A stretch of 64,000 nucleotides of DNA, from NCBI GenBank assembly GCA_002269645.1, contig NIVC01000571.1:372001-436000 (forward strand), in the 5' to 3' direction. The DNA comes from Macrostomum lignano (lineage: Eukaryota). Of the stretch, positions 271 through 64,000 are shown piece by piece. A program made the translations under genes and the position numbers. The stretch's first letter is position 1. Every line of letters starts with the position of its first letter. The notes beneath the pieces are model-generated. The model ran no database searches and was not told where the DNA came from. It worked only from the letters and a program-made list of their open reading frames with translations.

Positions 271-732
271 ATCTGCACAGCGCTCCACTTCCTGCACAGC
301 CGCAGTCCCGTCACCCTGCACCGTGACATCAAGTGCTCCAACATAATGCTCACCAACGAGGGCCTCATCAAGCTGATCGACTTCGGTGTCGCCAAGGAGG
401 TCTTCGCCACAATGTGCAGCACCAAGACGGCGCACGGCACCCTCCATTTCATGGCTCCTGAGCTGTTCAGTGAGGACGAAGGAATCGTGTACTCACCCAA
501 GACTGACGTGTGGGCTTTCGGCTGCTCCGTGTTCGAGATGCTGGAGATGAAGCCTCCGAACTGGCAGTTCAGGTGGCAGCAGATCCCGCTGAGGATTCAC
601 AACCACGACATGCCGCAGCTACCGGCGGAGGCCTCCGCCCTGCTGAGGGACTTCTACGGACGGTGCGTCCAGAGGGAGCCGAGGAGGCGAGCGGCCGCCG
701 CGGAGCTGCTGGAGCACAAATTTCTGCAGTGA
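271..732 (+). CDS. Last coding exon of a STE11/MAP3K (MEKK2/3-like) Ser/Thr kinase
   Basis: Acceptor CACAG at 270. Motifs HRDIKCSN, DFG, GTLHFMAPE, KTDVWAFGC and EMLEMKPP. Stop at 730-732, AATAAA at 1007-1012. Upstream exons lie outside the window. Confidence 0.88.
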   Translation: MCTALHFLHSRSPVTLHRDIKCSNIMLTNEGLIKLIDFGVAKEVFATMCSTKTAHGTLHFMAPELFSEDEGIVYSPKTDVWAFGCSVFEMLEMKPPNWQFRWQQIPLRIHNHDMPQLPAEASALLRDFYGRCVQREPRRRAAAAELLEHKFLQ

Positions 733-983
733 CAGACTGGCATGAGTCAGTGACAGACTGGCATGAGTCAGTGACAGATTGGCATGAGTCAGTGACAGAC
801 TGGCATGAGTCAGTGACAGATTGGCATGAGTCAGTGACAGATTGGCATGAGTCAGTGACAGATTGGCATGAGTCAGTGACAGACTGGCATGAGTCAGTGA
901 CAGATTCGCATGGGTCAGTGACAGATTGGCATGAGTCAGTGACAGATTGGCTTGAGTCAGTGACAGATTGGCATGAGTCAGTG
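727..983 (+). repeat. 21-bp tandem repeat in the kinase 3' UTR
   Basis: About 12 copies of CAGTGACAGATTGGCATGAGT. The first copy contains the stop codon. Confidence 0.95.
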
Positions 984-2790: not shown

Positions 2791-2950
2791 ATTGGGGTGG
2801 AGCTGAGCCAGGGTCAATATGTGTGTACATTATTGCCTTCGCTGGATGTACAACAGGCTGACCCCAGCAGCCAATCAGAAAGCGCGAGATTTTTTCGCTG
2901 CACCCATTGGCTGAGGCTGCAAGTTGTCAGCCCTCTGTGCTGAGCTATAA
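2791..2950 (+). promoter_or_regulatory. Putative promoter of the ankyrin gene
   Basis: ATTGG at 2791, CCAAT at 2871, ATTGG at 2906 and TATAA at 2946, about 60 nt upstream of the ATG. Confidence 0.45.
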
Positions 2951-3009
2951 CATCAGGTGTTACCCAGACTGGCAGTCACAGCTGGCAGCCCCCCAAGTTC
3001 TCAAGTGCC

Positions 3010-4308
3010 ATGACTAGCGATCTGGAGCAGCTGCTGCAGGAGGCGCAGGCCGACCCCAGCGCGCCCGAGGACATCGCGGACCGCATCTACGAGGCCGAGG
3101 GCATCCGCTTCCTGCTGGACAAGTTCGGCGACAGCGTGCTGCACGCCGCAGACGATGCCGGCAACACCGTGGCCAACTTGACGGCTCGCTGGTGCCAGAC
3201 CGACGAGCCGCTGCAGCTGCTCAGCGAAGCCTTGAGCAGCGCTGGCTGGAGCGTGTGCGAGTTCTTCACCAACCCGGGAGCCGAGAACGCCTGCCCTCTG
3301 CACTGCGCTGCCAAGAACCCCAGCATTGTCGCGCTGCAGTGGCTGATGCAGCTGCTGGGAGCCGAATACCTGCGCTCTCCTGACGCCTCGCACTGCCTCC
3401 CGGTGCACTACTCTGCACTGTACCAGTGCCCCGACGCTCTGGAGCTGTACAAGCGCGAGGCTGGCCTCTCCATCTTCGAGGAGACGACCAGTCGAGAGCG
3501 GACCGTCTTCCACTGCGCCACCATGAATGAGAGTGCCGACAACCTGCGCTGGCTGATCAGCGAGCTGGACGGCGAAGGCAGCTTCCTGGTGGCTCGCGAC
3601 ATCTCAGGCAACACGCCGGTGCATCTGGCCGCCTGGTGCCAGGACGTGGACACCATGGAGCTGCTGAAGGAGCACCTGGGTGAAGAGATGTTTGACCTGT
3701 CCGGCGAGGACGGCGAGACCCTGGCTCACAGCGCCGCCCAGAACACGCAGAGCGGCGAAGTGCTGGCTTGGTGCATCCGGGAGATGGGCCCGGAGCGCCT
3801 GGCCACCGCTGACTGCTGGGGCAAGACCGTCACCCATCGGGCAGCAGAGAACCAGACGGCGGAGTCGCTGCAGCTGCTGTTTGAGGCACTCGGCCGGCCG
3901 TGCCTGGAGGCCGTGGACAGCTCCGGCCGCTCCGCCGTGCACTACGCGGCCACCAACACCGCCAGCGACTCGGCGTTGCGGTGGATCGTCGACCTGCTCG
4001 GGCCTTCGTGTCTGGTCAAGGAGACAGATGCGCAGGGTATCAAGCCAGTCCACTTGATGGCGCGGCACCTGGACACGGAGGCGCTGGACTACCTGGACAG
4101 CCTGGATTACCGGCTGGTGTTCCGAACAACCGACCGGGACGGGCGCACGCTGGTGCACTACGCCGCCGAGAATGAGCTGTGCCGCGACATGCTGGCCTGG
4201 TGCGTCAGCCACCTGGAGGACCCGATGTGGCTGCAGGAGGAGGACTTGTTCGGCAAGAGTCCGCTGTACATTGCCAGCGGCCGCAAGCCGGAGTACGTGA
4301 TTGAATAA
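3010..4308 (+). CDS. Intronless ankyrin-repeat protein, 432 aa
   Basis: About 11 repeats of 35-37 aa with the G-x-T-x-x-H-x-A-A pattern. Kozak-like GCCATG start, AATAAA at 4501. Confidence 0.9.
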   Translation: MTSDLEQLLQEAQADPSAPEDIADRIYEAEGIRFLLDKFGDSVLHAADDAGNTVANLTARWCQTDEPLQLLSEALSSAGWSVCEFFTNPGAENACPLHCAAKNPSIVALQWLMQLLGAEYLRSPDASHCLPVHYSALYQCPDALELYKREAGLSIFEETTSRERTVFHCATMNESADNLRWLISELDGEGSFLVARDISGNTPVHLAAWCQDVDTMELLKEHLGEEMFDLSGEDGETLAHSAAQNTQSGEVLAWCIREMGPERLATADCWGKTVTHRAAENQTAESLQLLFEALGRPCLEAVDSSGRSAVHYAATNTASDSALRWIVDLLGPSCLVKETDAQGIKPVHLMARHLDTEALDYLDSLDYRLVFRTTDRDGRTLVHYAAENELCRDMLAWCVSHLEDPMWLQEEDLFGKSPLYIASGRKPEYVIE

Positions 4309-4840: not shown

Positions 4841-7390
4841 TCACTCTGGCAGCAGGGTGTCGTCCAGCTCCTCGTCCGCGAACTCGTCCACCGGGGCGCG
4901 CCTCGCCGCCGTCCTCGGGCGCTCGCGCTCCGCTCCCAGTGGGTCCTCGTAGTCCATGCTGGGCTGCTGCTGCAGGGGCTGCCGCTGCTGCTGGTGCGGC
5001 TGCGGCGGCATTTGCGCCTGAGGCCGGTAGCCGCCGGTGCCCGCCGAGTTCTCTCTGCTGCCCGCCTGGCCAACGACGCTGCTGCGCCGTCCAGCGCTGG
5101 CCTGCCGCTGCTCTCGGGCCTCCTGGCTCTTCTCGGCTTTCTTCAGTTTGGCAGTGTATTCGGCCGCCTCGTCCAGGCCGAGGTCGGTGCTGATCCGCAC
5201 CAGGAACTTCAGGCATTCAACATTGTCTGGGAAGCGCCTGTGCACGGACTTGTAGGTCTCCAGAGCCACCTGGTAGTTGCCGCTGCGCCTGTGGCAGCTG
5301 GCGATCATCAGCGGCCACTTCACCTGGCCCGGCTGCATCATGGCGGCCCGCTCAAAGTAACCGATGGCCTTCTCGCAGAACTGCGCCTCGATGTAGTAGG
5401 CGCCCAGCCACTCAATCACCTGGAAGAGCAAAGCGGTAGGGGTCTCGACTTGAAATCACGTAAGTCTTAAAATAAACCAGCTCATTCCTAATAAGGATAT
5501 GTTGTCAGGCAAGCCTAAATCACAGAAGGCACCCCGTCCACTTACATCGAGGTTGGCCGGATAGTATCTGAAGGAATCGTAGTAGTAGGAGAACGCCTGC
5601 GACTTGTCACCCTCATCCTCGCAGAAAGCGGCCAGACGCTGCAGCAGCTTGGGGTCGGTGGGCAGAATGCCGTTCAGCTGCAGGTACCACTCCTGCGCCT
5701 GGTTGCGCTCGCCAATCTTCTCGAACACATCGGCCAGCTGGTAGATGACCTGCGCCGAGTTCTTGAAGATCGTGTGAAGCTTCTGAAACGCGTCCAGAGC
5801 CTCTTCCATGCGGCCCAGCCGCTTGTTGACCAGGCCCAGGTTGTACAGAGCCTCTACACAGGAGCTGTCGTTGTTCAGTGCGTCGTTGTAGAAGTCGCGA
5901 GCCCTTTCGAAGTCCTTCTGCTGGTAGAACACGTTGCCCTTGTTGACCAGAGCGGCCGGATTGTACCTGTCAGCCTGCAGCGACTGGTCAGCATACTTGT
6001 CCGCCTGCTGGAGGTTGCCTTCCAAGTAGTGCAGGAACGATAAATTCACTCCGGCAGCGGAGGCCAGCCGGGTGTCCTTTTTCTCGAAGGACTTCAATGA
6101 TTCGATGGCTTTGCGGTGGAGAGACTCCTCACCTTGGTGGAAGTCCCGCTGCTTGAGGAACATCATGGCCTTGTCGATCTCCAGATCGTGGCCGATGTTG
6201 AGGAAGGCGGAGGACTTTACCTGGTCGATGCACCAGTCGTAGCCGTCCGAAAAAGTCTCCTCGATGACCGGCGCGATAATCTTGGCAGCCATCTTGATGC
6301 GCCGCTCAGCGTCCTGCTCCCTCTCCATCTCCACTTTGCGCAGGTCGTCATTGCGGATGACTTCCTGAATGAGCTCCGTCTGCCTATCGCTGTTGGGCGC
6401 GAGGGTGTAGCGGTCCGGGTCACCCAGCTTCAAGTCGACGGAGAGCATCTTTGTGAAAGCCATCTTCATCATGTTCCTTTCGTTAATGGTGTAGTAGCAC
6501 AGCAACAGGTTGAAGCCAGTTTTGAAGTCCGGCTGCTCTTGCATGATGTGCTCGAACGACGTGATGGCGTCGTGCACCTGACCCATCTTGATGAAGGCAA
6601 TGCCGATGTTCTGCATGATCTTGATGCGCAGGCTTTTGTGCGTGTTGGGGATCTGATCCAGGGCCATACGGTAGAACTTGATGGCCTTGGCGAACTGCTT
6701 CTGCCGGAAGTAGATGTTGCCCATGTTGACCTTGAGTCTCCCGGCGTGGGCAAACATCTTGTTCTTCACGATGGCCTGATAGGCATTGAGGGCCTCCTGG
6801 TACATGTCATTCGCCTGGTACTGATTGGCCAGGTTGAATAGAACCATGTACGTCAGGTCCATGTTTGCCTGGTCCGTGCTGCTCAGGTCCTCTCGCTTCC
6901 GCAGCAGGTCCTTCTCCTTCTTGGCTGCCTCCTTCGCCTTCTGCAAGGCGGCGCCCTTTTCGCCACGCGACAGCGCCAGACAGGATTCTTCAACCAGCTG
7001 CACCACCTCCTTCTCCAGCGCCCGGATCTTCTCCTCCGGACTGTTATCCGCCTTGGCCTCGAGCGGCGGCGCCGGTCGAATGTCGCCAGCGGATCCTTTG
7101 CGAGCGTTGCGGGTGAAGCCGGCGGCTCGCACGGCGGTCATCGGCCGGGCCTCGGTGCCGGCAGCTCCGGCCCCGACCTGTCCGGTGCGCAGGCCGGCCC
7201 GCGTGCCCGTTGGCGGCGGCTTCCCCGCGGTGCCGGCGGCAGCGATGTTCGGGGCCCGCCTGCCGTGGCTGGTGCGCACAGCCTGCTGCACGGACTCGTC
7301 CCGGAGAATCTCCTCGGTGTTCAGAGCGGAGTACTCGTTAAAGCCGCCGTATAGGTCGTCCTCATCCTCCATGGCGTCGAATTGGTTCAT
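4841..7390 (-). CDS. IFT88: Intraflagellar transport protein 88 (TPR protein)
   Basis: Exons 7390-5546 and 5419-4841 with a phase-0 GTAAGT..CAG intron; possible extra 24-nt intron at 6132-6109. Conserved segments EDDLYGGFN, RPMTAVRAAGF, VIEWLGAYY and C-terminal FADEELDDTLLPE. Confidence 0.97.
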
Positions 7391-7664
7391 CGCTGGAGGC
7401 AGTTGATGAAAACACACTAAATTATTCGTTAGATGGAAAAGCTTTCAAAATACAAAAGCAGCTGCTTCACTACTGCGGGCCATGAACAAAAATTCGCTGG
7501 AATTCCACAGTTTGAATTTCGCGCCAAATTTTGCCGCGGCTGAGAGGAGAGGTGAGGCGGTGAGGAGGGGGCTCAGGAGACAGCCAACTGGCCTCTCCGC
7601 GAGGAGGGCAACTGTACTCTGGGCTGGGGCAGGTGGAGAGAGAGATATGAGAGAATTTGTGCGC

Positions 7665-10368: not shown

Positions 10369-10658
10369 TTGATTACACCTGCCCAATGGGCAGATGTGCA
10401 ACCGACAGCTCAGCCGCAGCTATTGCGCGGCGCATCTGAAGGCTGCGTACGGCTGTTCAGTCCAAGGACTGGGGGGTCGCCACACACACCCTCAATTACC
10501 CCAGCTAATGCTGGTACCCATTTTACAGCTGGGTAAACTGAAGCAATGCAGAGTTAAGTGTCTTGCTCAAGGACACAAATTGTTGCAGAGGGATCGGGAA
10601 TCGAACCCCCGACCTTCAAGTCGTGAGTCCGACGCCCTAACCACTAGGCTACAACCCC
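10369..10658 (-). mobile_element. tRNA-derived SINE with CORE/MIR-like middle domain, copy 1
   Basis: Minus strand: A-box TAGCCTAGTGG, B-box GGTTCGATTCC, then GTGTCCTTGAGCAAGACACTTAAC..CAGTTTACCCAGCTGTAAAATGGG. A second, closely similar copy lies at 40064-40354. Confidence 0.85.
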
Positions 10659-10979
10659 TAGAAGGCACTATTAAAAGCTAATATCAAGCATATTTTTCAC
10701 ATTGAAAAAGATGTGCTTAGCTGTTCCATTGTGCAATGTTGCAATTTTTAGCAATATGACTACCACTCACCTATCTTCTTAGTCCTTGGGAATGCCTATT
10801 TATTTAAATTATTATTTCTTTTTATTCATGCCACAATTTGCCTTTGAACCTTCAAAGTTCTAGGTATTTTGTAAGCTTGTTATTAAAAAAATCTGCTAAT
10901 CTTAACCAGATTTGTCAAACCTCAAATCAGTCTTTTTTAGTTTCAACTTTTCAACTTTTTTGTTTAACTGCATGGCTGC

Positions 10980-29598: not shown

Positions 29599-30021
29599 TC
29601 ACGCCAGCAGCTGCAGGAACTCAACGTAGTTGATGAGGCGCCGGCCGTCGCAGCCTCCGCAGTTTTCGGCGCCGACATCCCGCAGCTGGCGGCCCAGCTT
29701 GCGCGCGGCCGCGGCCGCCTCTTCGACGGTGAGGAGGCCGTCGGAGTCTGCGTCGGCAGCCCGAAATTCGGCCAGGCGGCCGAGGTCCGGCAGCGGCCGG
29801 CGCAGGTGGACGTCGGCGGCGGCCTCGAACTCGGCGAAGTCCACGCAGCCGCTGGCGTCGCTGTCCACCCGGCCGAGAATGCCGGCCACCTCCGCCTCCG
29901 TCAGGCGGCGCCCGTTGGCGCTGGCGCCGAAAGCGCGCATCAGGGCGCCGAACTCGCGCAGGTCGAGGCTGCCGTTGCCGTCGACGTCGAAGGCGTTAAA
30001 CAGGTCGCGGCTGCTGCTCAT
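29599..30021 (-). CDS. Intronless calmodulin-like EF-hand protein, 140 aa
   Basis: EF loops DVDGNGSLDLRE, DSDASGCVDFAE and DADSDGLLTVEE, plus a degenerate fourth ending INYVE. TTTTCAG acceptor 5 nt before the ATG. Confidence 0.9.
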   Translation of the reverse strand: MSSSRDLFNAFDVDGNGSLDLREFGALMRAFGASANGRRLTEAEVAGILGRVDSDASGCVDFAEFEAAADVHLRRPLPDLGRLAEFRAADADSDGLLTVEEAAAAARKLGRQLRDVGAENCGGCDGRRLINYVEFLQLLA

Positions 30022-30529
30022 GATGGCTGAAAACTGTCGTCGGGACTCGGGGATCTCCTGGCTGCTGTCGCTCCTCTGGAGGTGGAAGTGGCCGACTTTG
30101 CCCGGCTTTTATGGAGGGCTGTCGGCCGCACGGCCCCGGGGGACCAGCGACGCGGCCGGGCCAATGCGGACTGGGGGCCAAAAATTGTCAAAGCATTCCT
30201 GAACTCTCAAAGTTTTGAACGATCGCAGAAATTCGTGACAGGGAATGAGACCGAGCCGGCCGGCTTGGCCCGGACAATATTGACTCTCCGTGAGGCCTCG
30301 TATGAGCATGCTTCATCGCTTGGGAGGCTGGGTCTCGTAGCGGAGTTTTGAGAAGTGGCCGGATCTAGATCACGTCGAGGGTTTTAGGGACTTCAATAGT
30401 TTATTTTCGTAACCTCAGATGTTCAAGTTAAAGGTTTTAAAGCAAGGGGTGCCGTGTCAAGAGTTAAGTGTCAGGGCCTCAGAGTCAATGGGTTAAAGTG
30501 CAAGGGTTCATGAGCAAGGACTCATGGTC

Positions 30530-31745
30530 TAACAGGGTCTAGGGGTCAGGGTCTAGGGTTCATAGGCAAGGGTTCAGGTTCTAGGGTTCATAGGCAAGGG
30601 TTCAGGTTCTAGGGTTGGGTTCAGGGTCTAGGGTTGGGTTCAGGGTCTAGGGTTGGGTTCAGGGTCTAGGGTTGGGTTCAGGGTCTAGGGTTGGGTTCAG
30701 GGTCTAGGGTTGGGTTCAGGGTCTAGGGTTGGGTTCAGGGTCTAGGGTTGGGTTCAGGGTCTAGGGTTGGGTTCAGAGTCTATGGTTCAGAGGCTGTGGT
30801 TCAGGGGCAAGGGTTCAGAGGCTGTGGTTCAGGGGCAAGGGTTCAGGGGCAAGGGTTCAGGGGCAAGGGTTCAGGGGCAAGGGTTCAGGGGCAAGGGTTC
30901 AGGGGCAAGGGTTCAGGGGCAAGGGTTCAGGGGCAAGGGTTCAGGGGCAAGGGTTCAGGGGCAAGGGTTCAGGGGCAAGGGTTCAGGGGCAAGGGTTCAG
31001 GGGCAAGGGTTCAGGGGCAAGGGTTCAGGGGCAAGGGTTCAGGGGCAAGGGTTCAGGGGCAAGGGTTCAGGGGCAAGGGTTCAGGGGCAAGGGTTCAGGG
31101 GCAAGGGTTCAGGGGCAAGGGTTCAGGGGCAAGGGTTCAGGGGCAAGGGTTCAGGGGCAAGGGTTCAGGGGCAAGGGTTCAGGGGCAAGGGTTCAGGGGC
31201 AAGGGTTCAGGGGCAAGGGTTCAGGGGCAAGGGTTCAGGGGCAAGGGTTCAGGGGCAAGGGTTCAGGGGCAAGGGTTCAGGGGCAAGGGTTCAGGGGCAA
31301 GGGTTCAGGGGCAAGGGTTCAGGGGCAAGGGTTCAGGGGCAAGGGTTCAGGGGCAAGGGTTCAGGGGCAAGGGTTCAGGGGCAAGGGTTCAGGGGCAAGG
31401 GTTCAGGGGCAAGGGTTCAGGGGCAAGGGTTCAGGGGCAAGGGTTCAGGGGCAAGGGTTCAGGGGCAAGGGTTCAGGGGCAAGGGTTCAGGGGCAAGGGT
31501 TCAGGGGCAAGGGTTCAGGGGCAAGGGTTCAGGGGCAAGGGTTCAGGGGCAAGGGTTCAGGGGCAAGGGTTCAGGGGCAAGGGTTCAGGGGCAAGGGTTC
31601 AGGGGCAAGGGTTCAGGGGCAAGGGTTCAGGGGCAAGGGTTCAGGGGCAAGGGTTCAGGGGCAAGGGTTCAGGGGCAAGGGTTCAGGGGCAAGGGTTCAG
31701 GGGCAAGGGTTCAGGGGCAAGGGTTCAGGGGCAAGGGTTCAGGAG
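30530..31745. repeat. G-rich telomere-like satellite (19-bp then 14-bp units)
   Basis: CTAGGGTTGGGTTCAGGGT at about 30600-30775, then about 65 near-perfect copies of GGGGCAAGGGTTCA at 30820-31742. Confidence 0.96.
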
Positions 31746-32399
31746 CAAAAGTGTCTGCGAGACCAAGCCGGAGTGCCACTGCATTGCGGCAGCAGACCGC
31801 CATGCAGGTTCCGTGCTGTGAGCAGGTCGTTAAAATTGGATCGCGGATCAGGGAGGCTGCTGCTGGGCAGATCGATCTCGCTCTGATCGAAGTCTCCAAG
31901 TCATAAAAGGTTTGCACGCGAATTTTGACATCACGCTGGCTGAGGGGGGTGAAGCCCCCGGGGATCAAAGAGGTGTCGGGAAGGATCCGGCTAACGGGGC
32001 TGTCGCGATTCCGTCGGCGATACGGCCCGGGGCTCGAAAATTTCCCACCGAGCCTCGGTGTGGAGCTCCCAGAGCTGACAAGATCCGGGAAGCCGCGTGT
32101 TCCAAAACTGACGCCAAAGAAGATAAAAAGTGGAGCGCTAATGTCTGGCTAATGAATAATTCATGAGCAGCTTGTAGGGGCCGTTGCTATCATTTGCGAA
32201 TAACGACAACTTTGGTCGATGCGGCTCTTCTTTGAAAGTTCAAGTGAGGAAATTCTCTGTAATTTAACGCGGAATTTCTTGAGATAATAACTTGAGGGTA
32301 TTACACTGCAATGCAACCAAGGGACACCGTAGTATTGACAGTGAGGACAACTTCTTGGGCCTTGGCTCGGAGGCAGCTTAAATACCCAATAATTAGTCA

Positions 32400-39100: not shown

Positions 39101-42100
39101 GATGCTAGGGGCGGATGCTAGGGGCGGATGCTAGGGGCGGATGCTAGGGGCGGATGCTAGGGGCGGATGCTAGGGGCGGATGCTAGGGGCGGATGCTAGG
39201 GGCGGATGCTAGGGGCGGATGCTAGGGGCGGATGCTAGGGGCGGATGCTAGGGGCGGATGCTAGGGGCGGATGCTAGGGGCGGATGCTAGGGGCGGATGC
39301 TAGGGGCGGATGCTAGGGGCGGATGCTAGGGCGGATGCTAGGGGCGGATGCTAGGGCCGGATGTTGCATGAAGAGGCAGATGTTAAGAGCAGATGCTAGG
39401 GGCGGATGCTAGGGGCGGATGCTAGGGGCGGATGCTAGGGGCGGATGCTAGGGGCGGATGCTAGGGGCGGATGCTAGGGGCGGATGCTAGGGGCGGATGC
39501 TAGGGGGCGGATCTCACCATCCCGCAGCTTCATGATGACGCCCTCGAGCCGGCGCACGAGAACTCCGGCGGACACTTCAACGGCGTCGCCCGAGCTGCTC
39601 AGGCTGCCCGGCCCCAGCGGCAGCTCCAGCAGCGAGTCGCCGCCCACCTTGACGAACCGGGAAAGCTGCGGGATTGAAATGTTATTTTAGCTTTCTAAGA
39701 AACCTGATTGGGAGCAGCGGATGGGCGAGCAGAGCATAGACCAGCGGCCTCACCAGGCTGTCCCGGCTGGAGTTGACGGCCCGGCTGGAGTTGCCGAAGA
39801 ACCGGATGTCCAGCGACTCGTTGCCGTTGAAGGCCAGGCCGGCGATGGTGCCGATGAAGCGCGGCCTGAAGCTGCTGAAATGCGGCAGATTTGTTTTGCT
39901 GCGATCCCAACTTGCCTACTGAGGTCAGTAGCGACAGGCGGCCCGCAGCCAAGCACATTCCTCTGAGCCCTGAGCAGCGGAATCGAACCCGGGGATTCCA
40001 CACCCCATATCTGCGTCTCGTCCCAATATAATAGTAATAATAATGAGAATAATAATTCAAAAATTGATTGCACCTGCCCTAATGGGCAGATGTGCAGCCG
40101 ACAGCTCAGCCGCAGCAATTGCGCGGTGCAGCTGAAGGCTGCGTACGGCTGTTCAGTCCAAGGACTGGGGGGTCGCCACACATACCCTCAGTTACCCCAG
40201 CTAATGCTGGCACCCATTTTACAGCTGGGTGAACTGAAGAAATGCAGAATTAAGTGTCTTGCTCAAGGATACAAATAGTTCCAGTGGGATCGGGAATCGA
40301 ACCCCCGACCTTCAAATCGGGAGTCCGACGCTTTAACTACTTGGCTACAGCCCCAATACAGAAAATCATAAATTTCCAAACCTGGCATCCTCGGGCTCCG
40401 GCGCCAGTATAAACTCGTTATAGAAGGTCGTGGGCTCGAATTCTTGCTCCTCCTGAGTCTGGCCATCGACAGACAGGCGCAGCTTCCGGTTCTTCATCTC
40501 GAGCAAAACGCTTCGCTCGCTGCCATCGTCGATTCGATCGCGAGAGCTCAGCCGGATGACGTTGCGAGTTTCGCCGGTCGAGCTCGGCGTGGTTACCATG
40601 ACAACCAGTCGGCCGGACTCTGTCCGCAGCTCGATGAGGCCGTGGCTGCCGCGAGCGGAGGCGGCACCGGGGCGGAGCAGCGCCGAGTCGGGCGAGTGCG
40701 TGGCCAGCGCGAGTTCGAGCCGCTCGTCGGACAGAAACTTGACGGCAGAGCTGCCGAAGGCTTCGCTGATGGTGGCCCAGGTGTCTCCGTCCAGGTAGTA
40801 GCGGGCGGCCTGGCCAGGAATCGGACTGCAAGCGGCGTGGGAGAACTTGGGATTGGGATCTTGAGCTGGTTGGGATCTTGAGCTGGTTGGGATCTTGAGC
40901 TGGTTGGGATCTTGAGCTGGTTGGGATCTTGAGCTGGTTGGGATCTTGAGCTGGTTGGGATCTTGAGCTGGTTGGGATCTTGAGCTGGTTGGGATCTTGA
41001 GCTGGTTGGGATCTTGAGCTGGTTGGGATCTTGAGCTGGTTGGGATCTTGAGCTGGTTGGGATCTTGAGCTGGTTGGGATCTTGAGCTGGTTGGGATCTT
41101 GAGCTGGTTGGGATCTTGAGCTGGTTGGGATCTTGAGCTGGTTGGGATCTTGAGCTGGTTGGGATCTTGAGCTGGTTGGGATCTTGAGCTGGTTGGGATC
41201 TTGAGCTGGTTGGGATCTTGAGCTGGTTGGGATCTTGAGCTGGTTGGGATCTTGAGCTGGTTGGGATCTTGAGCTGGTTGGGATCTTGAGCTGGTTGGGA
41301 TCTTGAGCTGGTTGGGATCTTGAGCTGGTTGGGATCTTGAGCTGGTTGGGATCTTGAGCTGGTTGGATCTTGAGCTGGTTGGGATCTTGAGCTGGTTGGG
41401 ATCTTGAGCTAGTTAAATTTGCGAAAATACGAAAATATGAAAGCAAAATTTGGCAGCAACTTGAAGCAACTCACCCTGCAACCTGATGCAGCTTCACCCC
41501 AGTCCTGGCGGTGAACTGCCACAAGTTCAGCGGCTCGCCGTTCAGCGAAGCCTTCAAAATGATGCCGGCGAATCCGCTCCACTGCTGCAGCTGCTCGGCT
41601 GGGAACTGGAAGGAGAGATGCTTGAGCTGGTTAGCTGCCAGCTGGATCAGCCCTTTGGATTTTGGGAATGGGATGTGTGCGGTGGGCGGTGGCTTCCCCA
41701 CCCGTGACTGGGATTGGGATGTGTGCGGTGGCTTCTCCACCCGTGACTGGGGTGTGTGCGGTGACTTCCCCACCGGTGACTGGGGTGTGTGCGGTGGCTT
41801 CTCCACCCGTGACTGGGATGTGTGCGGTGGCTTCTCCACCCGTGACTGGGGTGTGTGCGGTGACTTCCCCACCGGTGACTGGGGTGTGTGCGGTGGCTTC
41901 TCCAACCGTGACTGGGCCGGATGTGTGCGGTGGCTTCTCCACCCGTGACTGGGGTGGATTCATTCCTGAAAGCCCTGGGTTCGACTCCCGGTAGGTGAAG
42001 CACTGTGAGTTGCTACATGCCTGTCCAACAATGAGATTCGAACTCGCGATGAGCCCAGGACCTCAGCTGTGGACAGACCCCGAAGTTCTATTCAACTATC

Positions 42101-45100
42101 AGTGCAGAAGCTTTCCCACACACTATGAGAGATTCGCCTGAATTTTTTCGCTTGCTACTCTTCAGTAGGCGGTCTCTCCTGTCCCCTCCCTGTCGCTGGC
42201 ACCCCAGCGGCACCCCAGCGGCACCCCAGCGGCACCCCAGCGGCACCCCAGCGGCACCCAGCGGCACCCCAGCGGCACCCCAGCGGCACCCCAGCGGCAC
42301 CCCAGCGGCACCCCAGCGGCACCCCAGCGGCACCCCAGCGGCACCCCAGCGGCACCCCAGCGGCACCCCAGCGGCACCCCAGCGGCACCCCAGCGGCACC
42401 CCAGCGGCACCCCAGCGGCACCCCAGCGGCACCCCAGCGGCACCCCAGCGGCACCCCAGCGGCACCCCAGCGGCTCACCAGTGCAGCGAGGTTGGGCGGC
42501 AGGCCGCCCAGGTGCAGGCTGGTGGAGAAGGGACTCAGCTCCGGGAACTGCTCGGCGTTCGGCAGCCCAAAGCGGCCGCTGTGGTAGCGGCCGGTGGCCG
42601 AGTCCCGGACAGACACGGCCAGGGTGCGGCGGTAGCGCCGGACGGTGGCCGAGTAGGCGACACCCGGCCGCAGGCGGAGGCTTTGGAGCGTCTGCAGGCT
42701 GGCGTTGCTGCCGGCGAAGGCCAGGCGGCCGTCGAGCACGTGGACGGAGCTGAAGTAGCCGACTTTGCCCTGCAGAGGTTCGCGGAGACGGACGGAGCTG
42801 GTGGGCTGGTCGGTGGCGAGGTTCGGGTTGGCCTTTGAAAGCTGGGAAGCTAGTCTAATCGGGATGATGAAGCTATGGGATGAATGTAAAAATGACAAAA
42901 AAGCGTGAATTAAGTGAATTAGGAAACTGAGTGAGCTGGTGCAGATGGGGAGCTGAGAGACCTGATGAAGCTTGTAAGGCTGGTGAAGCTGAATTAGCAG
43001 AAGTGGATGAAACAAAGGATGTTGATGAAGCTGATGAAGCTGATGAGGCTGATGAGGCTGATGAAGTTGATGAAGGCTGATGAGGCTGACGAAGCTGATG
43101 AAGCTGATGAGGCTGATGAGGCTGATGAGGCTGATGAAGCTTATGAGAAGCTTATGAGGCTGATGAAGCTGATGAGGCTGATGAAACTGGTGAAGCTGAT
43201 GATGCTGATGAAGCTAAGAAAGCTGATAACTCTAACGAAGCCTAACAAGTTACTGATGAGGAAGCTGAGGGAGGCTTGGCAGCAAGATTTCGCACCGCTC
43301 TCACGTCGGCCAGGACTGCCAGAACGCCGCTCTGCTCAGCCGGGATGAAGCTGATCTTGAGCTGGTTCAGCGTTGCCAGGTCGGCCACATCCTCAACCGG
43401 CAGCGTCAGGGAGTCGTTCCGGCCGAACTGCCTCACGTACTCGAGCTGCGGGCGGTGCGAGGGCGGATGCTGTGAGAAGACCGCGCAGATCTCTGAGTTG
43501 CTATGGGTGTGCTCAGAGGCTCAGGAGACTCACCGAGTTGACCCGGTCAGCCAGGGACCGCAGGCTCAGCCGGGTGCTGTTGATCTGCCGGCGCAGCTCG
43601 TCAAGCCGCTGCCGCAGGCCGCGCAGCTGGTCGGTCAGGCTGGGCGGCCCGGCGCTCGAGTTGCCCGACGGCCGCAGGGCGCGCCGCATCGCCTTGAGGT
43701 TGTCGCGGAGCTCCAGCACTGCGGACAGTGTCAATGGACTGATATGGATTCATAGCATTGATGGATTGATAGCATTGATGGGTTGATAGCCTTGATGGAT
43801 TGATAGCCTTGATGGATTGATAGCATTGATGGATTGATAGCATTGATGGATTGATAGCATTGATGGGTTGATAGCATTGATGGGTTGATAGCATTGATGG
43901 GTTGATAGCATTGATGGATTGATAGCATTGATGGCATTGCCAACTCTGCTACGTTGTCGCCAGTGAGTTCAACCAGGCGAGCCCAGCCCCAATCTGAGCA
44001 CTGCTCAGGCCACTCAGCCCCAACCTGAGCACTGCTCAGGCCACTCAGCCCCAACCTGAGCAATGCTTAGGCCACTCAGCCCCAACCTGAGCACTGCTCA
44101 GGCCACTCAGCCCCAACCTGAGCACTGCTCAGGCCACTCAGTCCCAATCTGAGCACTGCTCAGGCCACTCAGTCCCAACCTGAGCACTGCTCAGGCTACT
44201 CAGCCCCAACCTGAGCACTGCTCAGGCCACTCAGCCCCAACCTGAGCACTGCTCAGGCCACTCAGTCCCAACCTGAGCACTGCTCAGGCCACTCAGTCCC
44301 AACCTGAGCACTGCTCAGGCCACTCAGTCCCAACCTGAGCACTGCTCAGGCCACTCAGTCCCAACCTGAGCACTGCTCAGGCTACTCACGCTTGTCATCG
44401 TTGAGCCGCAGGTCGGTGCTCGCCTTCGCCTTTCTCCTCTTGATGGCCTCGGAGTCGGCCCGGATCTCCTCCCTGCTGGCCTCCAGGCCCACCAGCTTGG
44501 CCCGGATGTCCTCCTGCCTCGCTCGGCTGGAGTTCGCCTGCTGCAGCTCCGACAACCGGACCTGCGCTGCAGTAGGGGGGGGGTGAGTTTGCCAGTTGCT
44601 ACTTGCAGTAGAAGGCAAAATACCTTGCATTGTTCTGTGAAAGAGATGCGTCCACTACAGAAATAAGGTTCTCAGGAGTGAGTTCACTCGGGTTCTCAGG
44701 AGTGATTTCACTCAGGTTCTCAGGAGTGATATCAGTCAGGCCTCAGGAGTGATCTCACTCTGGTTCTCAGGAGTGATCTCACTCAGGTCTCAAGAGTGAA
44801 CTCACTCAGGTCTCAGAAGTGATCTCACTCCCAGCCGCACCCACTCACCCGAGTCCGCAGTCTCCCCGAGCTCCGTCACCATCGCGTCGGCTTCGGTAGA
44901 AAATTTCGGCTGTCGGAACTGCAGCGCCCGGGAGTTGAGCTCGTTGATCTGGAGGCTCTTCTCCCGCACCTTGTCGGCCACGGCTGCGGGGGGTCGGATG
45001 CGGGAGGGGGCGGGACTGCGTCTGCTACTGAGGCAAGTAGCGATTTGCGGGACACTGGGTTTGAAATTTTTTATGTCCCCCTGCACCTGCAACTCACCCT

Positions 45101-48100
45101 GCACCTGCATCTCACCCTGCACCTGCAACTCACCCTGCACCTGCAACTCACCTTGCACCTGCAACTCACCCTGCACCTGCAACTCACTCTGCACCTGCAA
45201 CTCACCCTGCACCTGCAACTCACCCTGCGCCTGCAACTCACCCTGCACCTGCAACTCACCCTGCACCTGCAACTCACTCTGCACCTGCAACTCACCCTGC
45301 ACCTGCAACTCACCCTGCGCCTGCAACTCACCCTGCACCTGCAACTCACCCTGCAGCTGCAACTCACCCTGCACCTGCAACTCACCCTGCACCTGCAACT
45401 CACCCTGCACCTGCAACTCACCCTGCACCTGCAACTCACCCTGCACCTGCAACTCACCCTGCACCTGCAACTCACCCTGCACCTGCTTCTCCGCCACCCG
45501 GGCCCAGTCGGAGTTGTTGATGGCGTCCAGCCGGAGGCGGGTGGAGTTGTCGATCTCCAGCAGCGCCGCCCGGGCCATGTTCGCCAGGAAGGTCGCCCGC
45601 TCGGCGGTCTTCTTCGAGGCCACCGCCATGCTGCCGCTGGTCTGCAGCAGCGGGTAGCCGGGGGCTGACAGCAGCGGCTGGAGCACGACCTTCGCGAAGA
45701 CGTCGACGTTCTGCATGTCCTGCACCTTGGCCTCCACGGCCCGCCGCGCCTCCTCCAGGTTCATCGCGGCCGCCGCCTCGCGCCGGGAGCGCCGGAGCGC
45801 CAGCTGGACGCCGACGATGGCGGAGCTTCTGGACAGGTCGCGGAGCTCGCCGTGCGCCTTGTACACACGGGCCCGGAGACCGTCCAGCTCGGTGGACTCC
45901 GACAGGTTCGTCAGCCACTGTGGGGTTGGGTGAACTTCTCTGAGATCCCAGCTCAACCTCAATGAGATCCCAGCTTAACCCCAATGAGATCCCAGCTCAA
46001 CCTCAATAAGATCCCAGCTCAACCCAATGAGATCCCAGCTCAACCTCAATGAGATCCCAGCTCAACCTCGATGAGATCCCAGCTCAACCCCAATGAGATC
46101 CCACCCAGCTCAACCTCAATGAGATCCCAGCTCAACCCCAATGAGATCCCACCCAGCTCAACCTCAATGAGATCCCAGCTCAACCCCAATGAGATCCCAG
46201 CTCAACCCCAATGAGATCCCAGCTCTATCTCAATGAGATCCCAGCTCAATCAACCCCAATGAGATCCCAGCTCAACCTCAATGAGATCCCAGCTCAACCT
46301 CTCTGAGATCCCAGGTCAACCTCATTGAGATCCCAGCTCAACCTCTCTGAGATTCCAGCTCAACCTCATTGAGATCCCAGCTCAACCTCTCTGAGATCCC
46401 AGCTCAACCCCAATGAGATCCCACCCAGCTCAACCTCAATGAGATCCCAGCTCAACCCTAATGAGATCCTAGCTCAAGCTCAATGAGATCCCAGCTCAAT
46501 CAACCCCAATGAGATCCCAGCTCAACCTCATTGAGATCCTAGCTCAACCTCTCTGAGATCCCAGCTCAACCTCATTGAGATCCCAGCTCAACCTCTCTGA
46601 GATCCCAGCTCAACCCTAATGCGATCCCAGCTCAACCACTCTGAGATCCCAGCTCAACCCTAATGAGATCCCAGCTCAACCTCTCTGAGATCCCAGCTCA
46701 ACCCTAATGAGATCCCATCTCAACCTCTCTGAGATCCCAGATCAGCACCACTAACATCCCTGCTCACCTCCAAGGACGCATTCAACCGGTCGTTGGCGTC
46801 GCCAGCGTTGGCCTGAAGGCGCCGGACCTCCGCCGCGTCACCTTCGGCCGCGGTGCTCAGCGCAGTGATCTCGGTGCCCAGCTGAAGCAGCCGGACATCA
46901 GCGGCGCCGGCGCCGTCCATCGCAGCTCCAGTGAGGTTGAGCGCGGCCATCAGGTAGGATGAGGCGTAGGAGATCCCCAGAGACTGGGAGCCGGCCTCGG
47001 CTGCGCCCGCACTGATCCGGGCCTGCACCTCGGCCAGCCGACTTTTCACTGATGGGTTGGGTGGGGGTTACGGGATCTGTCAGACTCAGGCTCAAAGCTT
47101 ATGGAGCATTCAACTTCGCAATACGTACTGGCCTGCTCCTGCGACAGGGTGCTGTTGTGCCGGTCCTTCACCGGGATCAGCACCCGGTTCTTCCGGGTCC
47201 AGAAGTCCTCGGTTTTTTTCGCCAGCAGCTGAGTGGCCTCCAAATAGTCCGGCTGGCTGACAAAGGCATCGCCGCGAGACTTGCTGGCCTCCAGCTGGCG
47301 GAGGAAGTCTGCGGGATGGGGGCGGTTGGTTGGCTTAGGTTAGTGGGCATGGGCAGGGGTTTGCTGGGTAGGGGTGTGTGGGGCAGGAATGTGTGGGGCA
47401 GGGGTGTGTGGGGCAGGAATGTGTGGGGCAGGAATGTGTGGGGCAGGGGTGTGTGGGGCAGGAATGTGTGGGGCAGGAATGTGTGGGGCAGGGGTTTGTG
47501 GGGCAAGGGTTTGTGGGGCAGGGGTTTGTGGGGCAGGGGTGTGTGGGGCAGGGGTGTGTGGGGCAGGGGTGTGTGGGGCAGGGGTTTGTGGGGTAGGGGA
47601 TTGTGGGCCAGGGGTGTGTGGGGCAAGGGTTTATTATTTTTTTATTAGAGGCAGGGGGTTGTGTGCACCCTGGCGCACTTTAAGCGACATAGGCACACAA
47701 CCGGCGAGAGGCATTACTGCCCATTCCGCCGACTCCCCTGAGCAGGCATACAAGCGCGCGGATACGTACGCAGGCACACACTCACACAGGAGTGTACAGC
47801 GGCCCTAACTTTATTTTATCGTTAGGCATGTACACTTCACTGCGCCTTGGGGGGTTGGCTCTCAAGGCCGTTAATTGCACTAGCAGAGCCAAGCCGAGAT
47901 TCTAATTTAGCCCTAAATTAATGTGACTGCACTTGGAATCGAGCCTGGGTCGCTGGCAGACCAGAGCCTGCGCTAGACCGCTGGGCTACGGCCTCCCTGG
48001 GGCAAGTGTTTGTGGGGCAGGGGTGTGTGGGGCAAGGGGTTTGTGGGGCAGGGGATTGTGGGGCAGGGGATTGTGGGGCAGGGGATTGTGGCGCAGGGGT

Positions 48101-59929: not shown

Positions 59930-62800
59930 TCAACAGGTCGCCGTGTAAAAATCCGGCCGCCGGCGCTGCCTGCCCGACCGGCGCACCGTGTTGCCGGGTT
60001 CAGCCGCGTCCAGGTTGCGCAGCGGCTCCCAGGCGTCCGGGCCGGCCAGCTGGCCCGCGGCGTCCTCGACGCTCTGACAGTCGTCCTCGGTGGCCGGCTT
60101 GGCTGGTGGCCTGCCGCTCAGATTCGGTCGGTCGATAAAGCGCTTCAAGCGGTCGTGGTGGACCAGCAAGCGGCGCCTGCCGTTCACAGCCTGCAGCCGG
60201 TAGTTCACAGGGCTGACCTTCTTAAGGACGATGAACGGGCCGGACCACCGGTTCGACAGCGACTTGCACTGGCCGCGCTTCATCGCATGGTGCGTCAGCA
60301 TCACTCGGTCATCGGTCTTGAAGTCGGTAGTCTCTGCCCCTAGGTTGTAGAACTCGTGCTGCGATTTCTGGGCCGTGTGCAGGTGCGCCCGCACAACCTG
60401 AAAGCCGCGCCTGATTCTCGCCTGCAGGTCCGCGCAGTCCTGCGGCTGGTCGCGCTGCCCACCGAGTGCCAAGTCGACCGGCAGTCTGGGCTCGATGCCG
60501 CGGAGCACTTTGAACGGCGACTCGCCCGTGGAGCTGTGCTCAGAGCTGTTGTAGGCCCACACGACATAGGGCAGCAGGGCGTCCCAGCTGGCCTGATTCT
60601 CTGAGCAGAATGCGGAGAGCATGTTGCCCAGCGTCCTATTGAACCTCTCGACGTTCCCGTTGCCGCTGGGGTGAAACGGTGAGGTCCTCGATTTTTCTGC
60701 TCCGAGCAGCGCGCAGGTCTGCTTGAAAACTTTGGCCTCAAACTGGCGACCTTGGTCCGAGTGCACGACCTCCGGAACTCCGTGCCGCAGCACCACACAG
60801 GTCACCAGAGCCTCGGCTATCGTCTTGGCGTCGATCTGGCTGAGGGCCGCCGCCTCCACCCACTTTGAAAATGTGTCGACAAAGCAGATGATGTAGCGCT
60901 TGCCAGACTCGGTGACTGGCAGTGGGCCCTTGATGTCGAGTTGCATGACAGCCCACGGCTTGGCCGGTAGCGGCTGCCGCACCAGCTCAGCGCGCGCTCG
61001 CTTTGGCGCTCCCTTGCGTCGTTGGCAGACCAGGCAGCTCCGCACCCAGTCCCGCACGTCCTCGCGCATGTCCGGCCACCAGGAACGCTCGCGCAGAGCC
61101 CGCAGCACCCGCCGCTGTCCGAGGTGACCCGCGCTCGGCCGGTCGTGCGCCTGGTGCAGCAGCTCCGCTCTCATGTGCTGGGGGATCACCGGCAACCCGT
61201 TGTGGAGCAGTGCGCCGTCCGGTGACAGCGTCAGACAGGGCAGCAGCTTCTGGACCGACGCACTCACCGCCGCCGGAACTTGAAAGTTGGGCTGGAGCAT
61301 CGCGTGCCGAACCGCGTGCAGAACCTGGTCCTGGTCCTGCTCGTCAGGCAGATTAGCGATCTGGAACTGCATCGCCGCTGCTCGGCTGAGGGTGTCTGGC
61401 ACGATATTCTCCTTGCCGGGCCGGTACAGGATTTCCAGGGGGAACTCCTGAATGAGCTGTAGCCAACGTGCCAGCCGACCGGTTGGCTCCTTCGCGTTGA
61501 GCAGCCCAGTGATCGGCTTGTGGTCGGTGAACACCTGGATCTTGCAGCTGTTGCTCAGGTACATGCGGAACTGCTTGAGGCTCCAAACAATCGCGAGCAG
61601 CTCCCGGTCCGTGGTGCTGTAGTTGCGCTCTGCCTTGCTCAGTGTCCGGGAAGCGTAGGCCACTGGCAGCTCCTGGCCGTCGCGCTCCTGGCTGAGCACC
61701 GCACCCAAGGCCACAGCACTGCTGTCACAGCTGATGACGATAGGCCGGCTGAAGTCGGGCAGCTGGAGCACCGGGGCCTGGGTCAGCGCGTCCTTCAACT
61801 TCTTCAGCACCGCAGCATGCTCTGACGTCCACACGAAGCCGCCGCCCGCGCCTTTCTGAGCCAGGTGATGCAGCGGTTTGGCAATGTCAGAGAAGTTGGG
61901 CACGAACCTGCGGTAGAAGCTGAGCATGCCGATGATGCGACGAACATCCTCCTCAGACTGCGGCTCCGGCATCCGCCTGATCGCCTCGACCTTCTCCGCG
62001 GCAGGTGCGATGCCGCTCTCAGAGACTTGGTGACCCAGGTACGTGACGCTCCGGTAGGCAAAGAAGCTCTTGCCTGGGTTCAGCTTCAGCTTGGCAGACC
62101 GCAGTCGATGCAGCACCTTGGACAGTGACTGAACGTGGTTCTCAAAGTCCCTGTTGAAGATGATCAAGTCATCAATGTACGCGATGACCTCCTCCCAGCT
62201 CAGGCCGGTCATAATGAGCTCCATCATTCGCTGGTACGTCGCAGGCGCGTTGCACATGCCGAATCCCATTTTGCGGAATTGCATCAGGCCGCTCGGAGTG
62301 TAGAACGCTGTCAACGGCCGATCCTCCTCTCTGACCTCCACCTGAAGGAAGCCTTGGCGCATGTCGATCGTAGAGAACCATGAGCAGCCAGCCAAGGAGT
62401 CGAGCGCTTGGTGCAAATGCGGCAGCGGGTGGGCGTCCTTCACTGTGAGGTTGTTCAGCGCCCGCCAGTCTACACAGACTCGGATGTCATTATTCTTCTT
62501 TCTGACGATTATCAGGTTGCTCGCCCACGGGCTGGTGGAGGGCTCGATGACGCCGTGTTGTCGCATCTGCTCCAGCTTCTCGTCCACTTGCCTCCTGAAG
62601 GCGTGAGGCACCCGCCGAGGCCGTTGGCGAATCGGGCGAGCGCCGTCGTCCAGCTCAATCTTGTGCTGCGCTGCGCTGCTCGTACCAACGTCGAACTCAT
62701 GGACTGAGACCACGTCGGCAAATGCCCTCAGCAGCATTGCTAAACGGTTGCTGTCCTCCTCCGGCAGCTCCGGATTGATGTTGAACTGGTCTGCGGGGCC
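59930..62800 (-). CDS. pol: Gypsy Pol (RT, RNase H, integrase), open and catalytically intact
   Basis: RT motif YIDD. RNase H CDSS / DRELLA / TDHK. Integrase HHCC zinc finger, LDIKGP / HSDQG / VERFN triad and C-terminal WSGPF. No chromodomain seen. Confidence 0.95.
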   Translation of the reverse strand, partial: GPADQFNINPELPEEDSNRLAMLLRAFADVVSVHEFDVGTSSAAQHKIELDDGARPIRQRPRRVPHAFRRQVDEKLEQMRQHGVIEPSTSPWASNLIIVRKKNNDIRVCVDWRALNNLTVKDAHPLPHLHQALDSLAGCSWFSTIDMRQGFLQVEVREEDRPLTAFYTPSGLMQFRKMGFGMCNAPATYQRMMELIMTGLSWEEVIAYIDDLIIFNRDFENHVQSLSKVLHRLRSAKLKLNPGKSFFAYRSVTYLGHQVSESGIAPAAEKVEAIRRMPEPQSEEDVRRIIGMLSFYRRFVPNFSDIAKPLHHLAQKGAGGGFVWTSEHAAVLKKLKDALTQAPVLQLPDFSRPIVISCDSSAVALGAVLSQERDGQELPVAYASRTLSKAERNYSTTDRELLAIVWSLKQFRMYLSNSCKIQVFTDHKPITGLLNAKEPTGRLARWLQLIQEFPLEILYRPGKENIVPDTLSRAAAMQFQIANLPDEQDQDQVLHAVRHAMLQPNFQVPAAVSASVQKLLPCLTLSPDGALLHNGLPVIPQHMRAELLHQAHDRPSAGHLGQRRVLRALRERSWWPDMREDVRDWVRSCLVCQRRKGAPKRARAELVRQPLPAKPWAVMQLDIKGPLPVTESGKRYIICFVDTFSKWVEAAALSQIDAKTIAEALVTCVVLRHGVPEVVHSDQGRQFEAKVFKQTCALLGAEKSRTSPFHPSGNGNVERFNRTLGNMLSAFCSENQASWDALLPYVVWAYNSSEHSSTGESPFKVLRGIEPRLPVDLALGGQRDQPQDCADLQARIRRGFQVVRAHLHTAQKSQHEFYNLGAETTDFKTDDRVMLTHHAMKRGQCKSLSNRWSGPFIVLKKVSPVNYRLQAVNGRRRLLVHHDRLKRFIDRPNLSGRPPAKPATEDDCQSVEDAAGQLAGPDAWEPLRNLDAAEPGNTVRRSGRQRRRPDFYTATC

Positions 62801-64000
62801 TTCTTCTTCTTTTCTTCTTCTTTTCTTCTTCCCTTTTGTCGCCGTGTGGCATGGGCAGTCTTCGGGGTCTCTCGTCAGCAGTCCTTGCAGGTGCGTAGGT
62901 GGCGTGCCATGTTCGTCGCGGCGAGCGTGCGCCCACAACCTTCGCATTGTTTAGTTTTCGCTCGGTACTTCCTCTCACCTCCCGGGGACCGTGTCTCTTC
63001 CCGCGTTGTACCGCAGGTTTTGCGGTGTCTCGCTAGGTTTGATTTCGATATTTCTCGAGCACAGGTCGCGCATTTTACGCGGTTTCCTCCCACTTCTCTC
63101 TCTCCTCCGCAGACCTTTACGTGGTTTAACCACGTTGCCTCTTGTCTGAACTGCTTCTCGCATTTTACGCACTTGAACGTTACTGGTTCTTCTATCTTGC
63201 GGTGCATCCTCTTTTGGTGAATGGTCAGGCCTGCTTTGCTTTTGCACTCCTTTCCGCAGTCTTCGTATTCACATATGAATGTTCTTGTTTTCTCCTGTTT
63301 CTGTTTGTCGTTCCTTTCGATGTTCCTTGCTTCTGCCTTCTTTCCTTGTTGTTGTTCCCATCTCTTGAGGTGGCTTATGCGTTCTTGAACAATTTTACGC
63401 CATTTCTGGCGGTCGGTTGCTAGTCTCTCTGTCATTTCCGGCTCGATCCCTGCTTGGCGTAGTAGTCGCTTCCAATATTCGATGGTGTTACCTTTTCTCT
63501 TACGTGTTTTCCTTATCTTTTCCAGACCCTTGTACCATCCGAGAACCATCTTTTTCGTTAGGCGGTTCGCCTCCATGCGAAGCACATGTCCGATGCGGAT
63601 CAGGTGGCTCTTCTCAATCTTTGTTTGTATTGTCGTTACTTCTAGTTCATTGCGAATGTCCTGCATATTTATTCCTTTTGCCTCCATTTCCCTTAGTGGT
63701 TCCATTTTCCTGCTGCTCCATATCTGCCGGTAGATTCGGTCCATGAAGCTTTGTAGTTGCTTCGTTTCTGACTTCAGGAATGGGCGTATGTTCGCGTGGA
63801 ATAGCAGGATGCTCTCTATACAGGCTTCAACGACCTTCGCTTGCGTGGTCTTTTTCAACCTGCACTTGATGAAACGTCTACGGATCGTCGACCAGCATCT
63901 CGCCGCTTTTTGCAATCTCTGGCTCGTGTCGTACTTCGTGTCCGTCCATGATCCTAGCATGCGTACTTTTCCTCCCTCTCTGGTTCCGAATATCATTACC
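62801..64000 (-). mobile_element. RTE-like non-LTR retrotransposon 3' end nested in Gypsy pol
   Basis: Short 3' UTR and (GAA)n tail at 62801-62835 joined to the Gypsy sequence. Post-RT motifs IGHVLRM..RLTKKMVLGW..DRQKWRKIV. Confidence 0.88.
62875..63996 (-). CDS. LINE ORF C-terminal part (RT thumb region plus four zinc fingers)
   Basis: Frame open to the window edge. One C2H2 and three C2HC fingers precede the stop at 62877-62875. Confidence 0.88.
   Translation of the reverse strand: MIFGTREGGKVRMLGSWTDTKYDTSQRLQKAARCWSTIRRRFIKCRLKKTTQAKVVEACIESILLFHANIRPFLKSETKQLQSFMDRIYRQIWSSRKMEPLREMEAKGINMQDIRNELEVTTIQTKIEKSHLIRIGHVLRMEANRLTKKMVLGWYKGLEKIRKTRKRKGNTIEYWKRLLRQAGIEPEMTERLATDRQKWRKIVQERISHLKRWEQQQGKKAEARNIERNDKQKQEKTRTFICEYEDCGKECKSKAGLTIHQKRMHRKIEEPVTFKCVKCEKQFRQEATWLNHVKVCGGEREVGGNRVKCATCAREISKSNLARHRKTCGTTREETRSPGGERKYRAKTKQCEGCGRTLAATNMARHLRTCKDC

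Follow-up and report, generated by a model that had tools for sequence, protein, structure and literature searches.

Minisatellites whose first monomer lies across an exon-intron boundary are a described class, with human representatives in F7, IFI6, CBS, LMNB2 and PDGF (PMC1557585). In intervening sequence 7 (IVS7) of human F7, which carries 5-9 copies of a 37-bp unit (Borensztajn et al. 2006), the most upstream of the identical donors is the only one used, and this exclusive use persists against downstream copies improved to TGG/gtgagt (PMC1557585). As far as the account cited in the same source goes, the authentic donor alone is used in the LMNB2 (100-bp) and PDGF (81-bp) repeats, and by the summaries given in PMC1557585 and PMC4526556 the authentic site and the next two are used in IFI6 (authentic donor and 25 copies) and CBS. 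Use of the nearest two copies in intron 2 of IFI6 (6-16) yields three mRNAs and different isoforms (Turri et al. 1995, as related in PMC1557585 and PMC4526556), and copy-number polymorphism is documented, within what PMC1557585 reports, for the 31-bp variable number tandem repeat (VNTR) of CBS intron 13 and for the LMNB2 and PDGF repeats. Here we analysed a stretch of 64,000 nucleotides from Macrostomum lignano (assembly GCA_002269645.1, contig NIVC01000571.1, positions 372,001 to 436,000 of the forward strand; the whole stretch is called the window) in which an 18-bp minisatellite begins inside an exon of a laminin gene and continues into the following intron. The reading that we favour, and hold to be fairly probable, is that of a junction-spanning minisatellite in which the first donor is used and the downstream copies are silent, with no designed function.

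The features on which the argument depends are given below in window coordinates, a slash marking a splice boundary.

45476 to 45917, minus strand: upstream coding exon (WLTNLSE...ARVAEKQVQ), an open frame with its acceptor ccccacag/TGG at 45917
45079 to 45486, minus strand: 18-bp minisatellite, delimited by Tandem Repeats Finder, a unit list and a pattern search
45097 to 45475, minus strand: 22 donor-grade 5' splice sites found by weight matrix (first intron base 45475-18k, k=0..21)
44984 to 45475, minus strand: putative intron as bounded by the first donor, 492 nt, of which 397 nt are repeat
44984 to 45078, minus strand: unique-sequence 3' end of the intron, containing an A/T-rich stretch and a C-rich pyrimidine tract and closing with the acceptor ccccccgcag/CC
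44849 to 44983, minus strand: downstream exon ((A)...ELGETADS), entered in phase 1, with the donor tcgg/GTGAGT at 44848 (models P0001-P0007)

The host gene is an alpha-type laminin of M. lignano, read on the minus strand from LE domains through a helical region to laminin G (LG) domains. The laminin context proposed in the initial annotation is borne out, as the LE domains upstream of the array (PF00053, E=2.5e-20 and 5.2e-06) and the LG domains downstream (PF02210, E=4.2e-08 and 5.3e-05) are all above the Pfam cut-offs. No Pfam match, to Laminin_I, Laminin_II or any other family, was obtained in the 472-aa helical region between the LE and LG exons, and what supports the label "laminin coiled coil" is the order of the domains and a rough heptad pattern. 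The upstream exon is 100% identical to the fragmentary UniProt models of M. lignano (P0001-P0005 and P0007) wherever their frames are intact. These entries are frameshifted fragments that carry unrelated automatic names (VPS13 domain, t-SNARE, NOP53, IBB domain and others), P0007 joins the laminin segment to other sequence, and a correct public protein model for this laminin gene seems to be absent.

The array has a period of 18, 22.7 copies, 96% matches and 0 indels (Tandem Repeats Finder), and its unit, written on the minus strand in the register of the gene, is GCAGGTGCAGG/GTGAGTT. It starts at 45486, 11 nt 5' of the first GT (45475), so that the exon-intron boundary lies inside unit 1, the last 11 nt of the exon (GCAGGTGCAGG) being the beginning of the first repeat unit and two-thirds of the unit deriving from the exon. 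The array contains 22 occurrences of the 18-mer GTGCAGGGTGAGTTGCAG, 15 of them exact and 7 with one mismatch, where 0.12 would be expected by chance. Variation between units amounts to one substitution in each of 7 units, with an amino acid change in six of the seven cases. The variant pattern of units 10-12 (GCG. AGT) is seen again in units 15-17, a likeness that points to a probable 90-bp in-register duplication, the usual behaviour of minisatellites. Three features of the junction-spanning class are found together here, namely head-to-tail units within the 10-100-bp range, an authentic junction within the first monomer and a donor reiterated unchanged in the downstream monomers.

The donors were scored with a weight matrix trained on the other donors of the same gene (23 sites, all GTGAG, one of which, at 58033, was later dropped as exonic). 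The matrix agrees with the initial annotation, which had proposed an in-frame ladder of about 22 donors, since the 22 sites score between 10.8 and 15.8, the training median being 12.5, and every one of them is in phase 1. GTGAGT is found at 21 sites and GTGAGA at one, and position -1 is G in 20 of them and A in two; 19 of the 22 are identical (cagg/GTGAGTTGC) and the other three are single-base variants, all within the score range of the real donors. The phase common to all the donors follows from the period of 18 being divisible by 3 and does not count as a separate observation. Across the sense strand of the 23-kb gene span, 34 GT sites outside the training set score at least as high as the weakest real donor, and 22 of these are in the ladder and one in the other arrays. 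When the arrays of the gene were examined for enrichment in the donor motif, sense GTGAG was absent from 24 of 27, which together with the one donor-grade site in all the other arrays indicates that the ladder is specific to the array derived from the junction, with no genome-wide design. The site CAG/GTGCAG, which would be a donor in phase 0, was rejected for its score below zero and for a phase that does not match that of the acceptor.

The GTGAGT at 58033 (minus strand; gacg/GTGAGTGCA, score 8.4) lies within an LE-domain exon, where it encodes ..PDGECIC.., and this donor-grade site has to be ignored by the spliceosome. Another exon-intron junction of the gene, at 41464-41481 on the same strand (TTGCAGG/GTGAGTTGC), agrees with the repeat unit in 15 of 18 bases but has not been amplified, its array beginning 60 nt deeper in that intron.

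We infer that the authentic donor is the first site, at 45475, and its use is probable on the protein models, the database search, the heptad register and the human precedents. The six M. lignano protein models P0001-P0005 and P0007 span the junction, and the repeat unit is found in none of them in any frame (the junctions read, for example, RSRCR/PLADKV, GQGR/AVADKV and GGGQA/AVADKV). The spacing of the anchors in these models is 92-101 residues, where 97 would be expected for zero units and 103 for one. Splicing from the first donor produces ..AEKQVQ/A/VADKVREK.., which fits P0003, P0005 and P0007, and the position of the junction is fixed by these three model junctions and by the acceptor at 44983, with which the donor agrees in phase 1 and whose pyrimidine fraction of 0.77 is the top value (tied) among the 12 acceptors measured. 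A search of 5.8 billion proteins with the read-through peptide detected no (VQGELQ)n beside this exon, the matches being known M. lignano fragments and one unrelated bacterial protein. HMMER comparison of the 472-aa helical region with 1.84 billion representatives returned M. lignano models only and no orthologue alignable across the junction. The product with zero units maintains a single heptad register over roughly the 25 residues preceding the junction and the 30 following it, where the hydrophobic a/d occupancy is 0.83, whereas a single hexad shifts the register and the inserts have an a/d occupancy of 0.33-0.5 and a glycine every six residues, which agrees with the earlier remark that hexads would break the heptad register.

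Several points weigh against this conclusion. The six models come from an error-rich assembly, are frameshifted and may be ab initio rather than transcript-based, so that their weight is modest. The 126 aa encoded by 21 units are exactly 18 heptads, and use of the last donor would therefore also restore the register. The predicted RNA structure gave no accessibility advantage to the first donor (unpaired 0.17, compared with about 0.5-0.68 for the others), and masking of the downstream donors by RNA structure is accordingly unsupported, the first donor being predicted to be the most paired. With duplicated donors in vitro the intron-proximal site is preferred, and one of the substrates was AGG/GUGAGU, the sequence present here (PMC3413131). 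Perfect-consensus downstream copies in F7 did compete (PMC1557585), and the sites of the laminin ladder are stronger than the natural F7 sites.

The open frame of the intron was examined for how special it is. Reading in the exon frame upheld what had been annotated, in that the intron from 45475 to 44984 is 492 nt long, or 164 codons, is a multiple of three (3n), contains no stop and reads (VQGELQ)n, so that the arithmetic of 0-21 extra hexapeptides, or of 164 aa upon retention, is correct. Among the 27 arrays of the gene 13 have a 3n period, and 21 of the 39 frames of these are open; the open frame of the array is nothing special in this gene. With the further conditions of an open 95-nt tail and a 3n total length the chance comes to a few per cent per intron, and by our estimate about one intron that is both 3n and stop-free is therefore expected in a gene of such size. 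Of the nine introns measured end to end, that of the array is the only one that is both.

In the process that we propose, an 18-bp seed, of which 11 nt were the end of the exon and 7 nt the start of the intron, would have been amplified by slippage or unequal exchange, and because the seed includes the junction the 5' splice site AGG/GTGAGT is present 22 times. The most upstream donor, 45475, would be used. The 21 copies downstream of it would be silent pseudo-sites removed along with the intron, apart from perhaps some low-level use of the second or third copy. The origin of the array would be neutral. Since the 18-nt period is six codons and derives in part from coding sequence, any mistaken choice of donor would remain in frame, and mis-splicing would be invisible to nonsense-mediated decay (NMD), which may be why the array has been tolerated.

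Other outcomes of the same ladder have to be weighed against the use of the first donor. It could be a limited ladder of the IFI6 and CBS type, with the first donor dominant, the second and third (perhaps more) used constitutively and in-frame isoforms of +6 and +12 aa escaping NMD. The sites share an identical -11..+7 context and their scores exceed the median for real donors, any choice among them is in-frame and stop-free, and in human IFI6 and CBS the pair of pseudo-sites closest to the authentic donor is used according to the accounts in PMC1557585 and PMC4526556; yet the unit appears in none of the six models, one extra hexad is already enough to shift the heptad register, and F7, LMNB2 and PDGF, as these sources present them, use the first site alone. 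We regard this outcome, a weaker version of the length dial proposed in the initial annotation, as unlikely. Equally doubtful is the broader claim that downstream donors are used in vivo (the second and third at least, and possibly many) to give a series of laminin alpha isoforms in VQGELQ steps; if true, the series would escape NMD and a mutable number of repeats would determine its range. A proximity rule, by which the donor nearest the acceptor (45097) would be used, about 21 VQGELQ hexads (126 aa) would be placed in the coiled coil and only about 114 nt would be left as the true intron, could appeal to the in-frame openness of the array, to the downstream register kept by 18 heptads, to codon third positions in the unit that are G or C in five of six cases, as in exons, and to the intron-proximal preference of duplicated-site substrates in vitro (PMC3413131). 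The VQGELQ peptide is found neither in the six models nor in the database search, however, the insert would have no heptad seam and would carry its regularly spaced glycines, six of the seven substitutions among units alter the amino acid, and natural junction-spanning minisatellites, in the cases these sources recount, use upstream sites in vivo. We consider such a rule improbable at this locus.

Intron retention, or recursive splicing through the internal TTGCAG/G sites, as a regulated output is the outcome to which we give by far the least credence. Retention of a 3n stop-free intron would add 164 aa and evade NMD, but the codon third positions of the intron's 3' tail (ATAAAAAATTTC...) do not look like coding sequence and about one such intron is expected by chance. 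AG and GT are juxtaposed in every unit (TTGCAG/GTGCAG), as at the ratchet points of recursive splicing; the laminin unit, unlike these, has no pyrimidine tract, a poor regenerated donor and a spacing of 11-18 nt. The internal AG sites have pyrimidine fractions of 0.23-0.41, compared with 0.50-0.77 in 12 real acceptors of the gene, and the regenerated donor CAGG/GTGCAG scores below zero with the donor matrix of the gene; the arrangement that defines a ratchet point, a functional 3' site directly before a functional 5' site, is thus lacking. When phase-1 donors are joined to internal AGs, 11, 17 or 5 (+18k) nt are removed and a TGA is met within five codons, the joins at TTGCAG/, GTGCAG/ and GGTGAG/ reading ..CAG GGT GCA GGG TGA, ..CAG GGG TGA and ..CAG GTT GCA GGT GCA GGG TGA, respectively; an in-phase AG is offered by unit 19 only (caAG/GTGAGT, 45151). 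The stepwise splicing through internal sites that the initial annotation had envisaged is thus contradicted by the poor pyrimidine fractions, by the frame leading into TGA and by the sub-zero donor, and was rejected. Its idea of a repeat-encoded length dial for the protein finds no support in the six models, in the 5.8 billion proteins, none of which has the repeat beside this exon, or in the human precedents, where the first one to three donors are used. Taking these results together with the repeat content of the gene described below, it is more probable that the array arose as a by-product of a genome full of repeats than that it serves as a length dial for the protein.

Simple and tandem repeats are reported to account for 15% of the M. 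lignano genome, an unusually large part (PMC5730564). The gene span 36100-59320 (minus strand) contains 27 minisatellite arrays, which occupy 44.7% of it, and arrays occupy 34% of the window. An array begins within 83 nt of the donor at 18 of 23 donors, and within 18 nt at six of those; arrays start 1-83 nt past 16 donors and at or before two more, the ordered offsets being -11 (the junction array), -3, 1, 4, 5, 18, 28 and onwards. Arrays end 23-95 nt ahead of the acceptors. The introns therefore consist approximately of a donor, one or two arrays and a segment with the branch site, pyrimidine tract and acceptor. The junction array does not look like a separate design and is the extreme of a continuous distribution of starting points. 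Three neighbouring arrays illustrate this arrangement:

44666 to 44830, minus strand: 24-bp array of the next intron, starting 18 nt past the donor 44848
45941 to 46770, minus strand: 22-bp array of the previous intron, about 37 copies, beginning at the donor GAG/GTGAGC
43984 to 44388, minus strand: 31-bp array, starting 1 nt past the donor G of AAGC/GTGAGT

The array at 44666-44830 contains four GTGAG pseudo-donors (GA/GTGAGA/T, the last base being A or T), and read-through from the exon meets a TGA, so that use of pseudo-donors there would truncate the protein. The units of the array at 45941-46770 carry a weak donor look-alike, GAG/GTTGAG. In the array at 43984-44388 the units repeat TGAGTGGCC after C and not G; the donor motif has been copied minus its GT, unlike in the junction array. 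Arrays abut coding ends outside introns too, as is seen in a 21-bp array of 12 copies (727-983, plus strand) that begins exactly at the stop codon (CAG TGA) of the C-terminal open reading frame (ORF) of a protein kinase (160-729; Pfam Pkinase, E=1e-32).

The window holds further features outside the exons described. An intact 1006-aa pol ORF of the long terminal repeat (LTR) retrotransposon type (59933-62950, minus strand), with RVT_1, RNase H, an integrase zinc-binding domain and an rve core, has the same orientation as the laminin gene, is found immediately 5' of the first LE exon seen in the window and may be within a laminin intron. A further long ORF at 62878-63999 has a C2H2 finger match. 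G-rich arrays at 30598-31748 consist of GGGTTCAGGGTCTAGGGTT (10 copies) and GGGTTCAGGGGCAA (70 copies, 98% identical) and have a telomere-like GGGTT core at an internal position. The remaining features are:

2944 to 4305, plus strand: ankyrin-repeat ORF
5459 to 7444, minus strand: TPR protein with TTC21-like matches
10585 to 10659, minus strand: tRNA-Val(CAC)
29602 to 30108, minus strand: EF-hand protein

As regards laminin biology, the repeat is most likely inert. More broadly, the introns of this gene are almost wholly minisatellite, with the splice signals as their only bounds. Taken at face value, the locus is also an unusually clean natural test of the choice among identical 5' splice sites, since 22 near-consensus copies at 18-nt intervals face a single acceptor and none of the choices carries a frame penalty. 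Two published rules oppose each other at such a place, oriented scanning to the most upstream site, as seen with F7 minigenes, and the intron-proximal preference of duplicated sites in vitro. Transgenesis is possible in M. lignano (PMC5730564), and a minigene test is therefore feasible outside mammals.

Compared with the described systems, the laminin array shares with F7 a first monomer that spans the boundary, an authentic donor followed by identical functional pseudo-donors and a single acceptor. F7 differs in having a 37-bp unit, which is not 3n, a weak site (TGG/gtgggt) and few copies, and its use of the first site was shown experimentally; the laminin array, known here from sequence, has an 18-bp unit, 22 copies, the near-consensus AGG/GTGAGT and choices that are all in-frame. 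IFI6 also has many reiterated donors and comes closest, among real cases, to a repeat-encoded length step, although it is another gene in another organism and its use is confined to the first three sites. CBS, LMNB2 and PDGF likewise carry a donor-reiterating VNTR at the exon/intron border, with at most two pseudo-sites used (CBS) or none (LMNB2 and PDGF), and differ in that their units are longer and do not form in-frame ladders. Judged by its sequence organization, the laminin array appears to belong to the known kind represented by F7, IFI6 and CBS, in which a minisatellite spans the junction and reiterates the 5' splice site.

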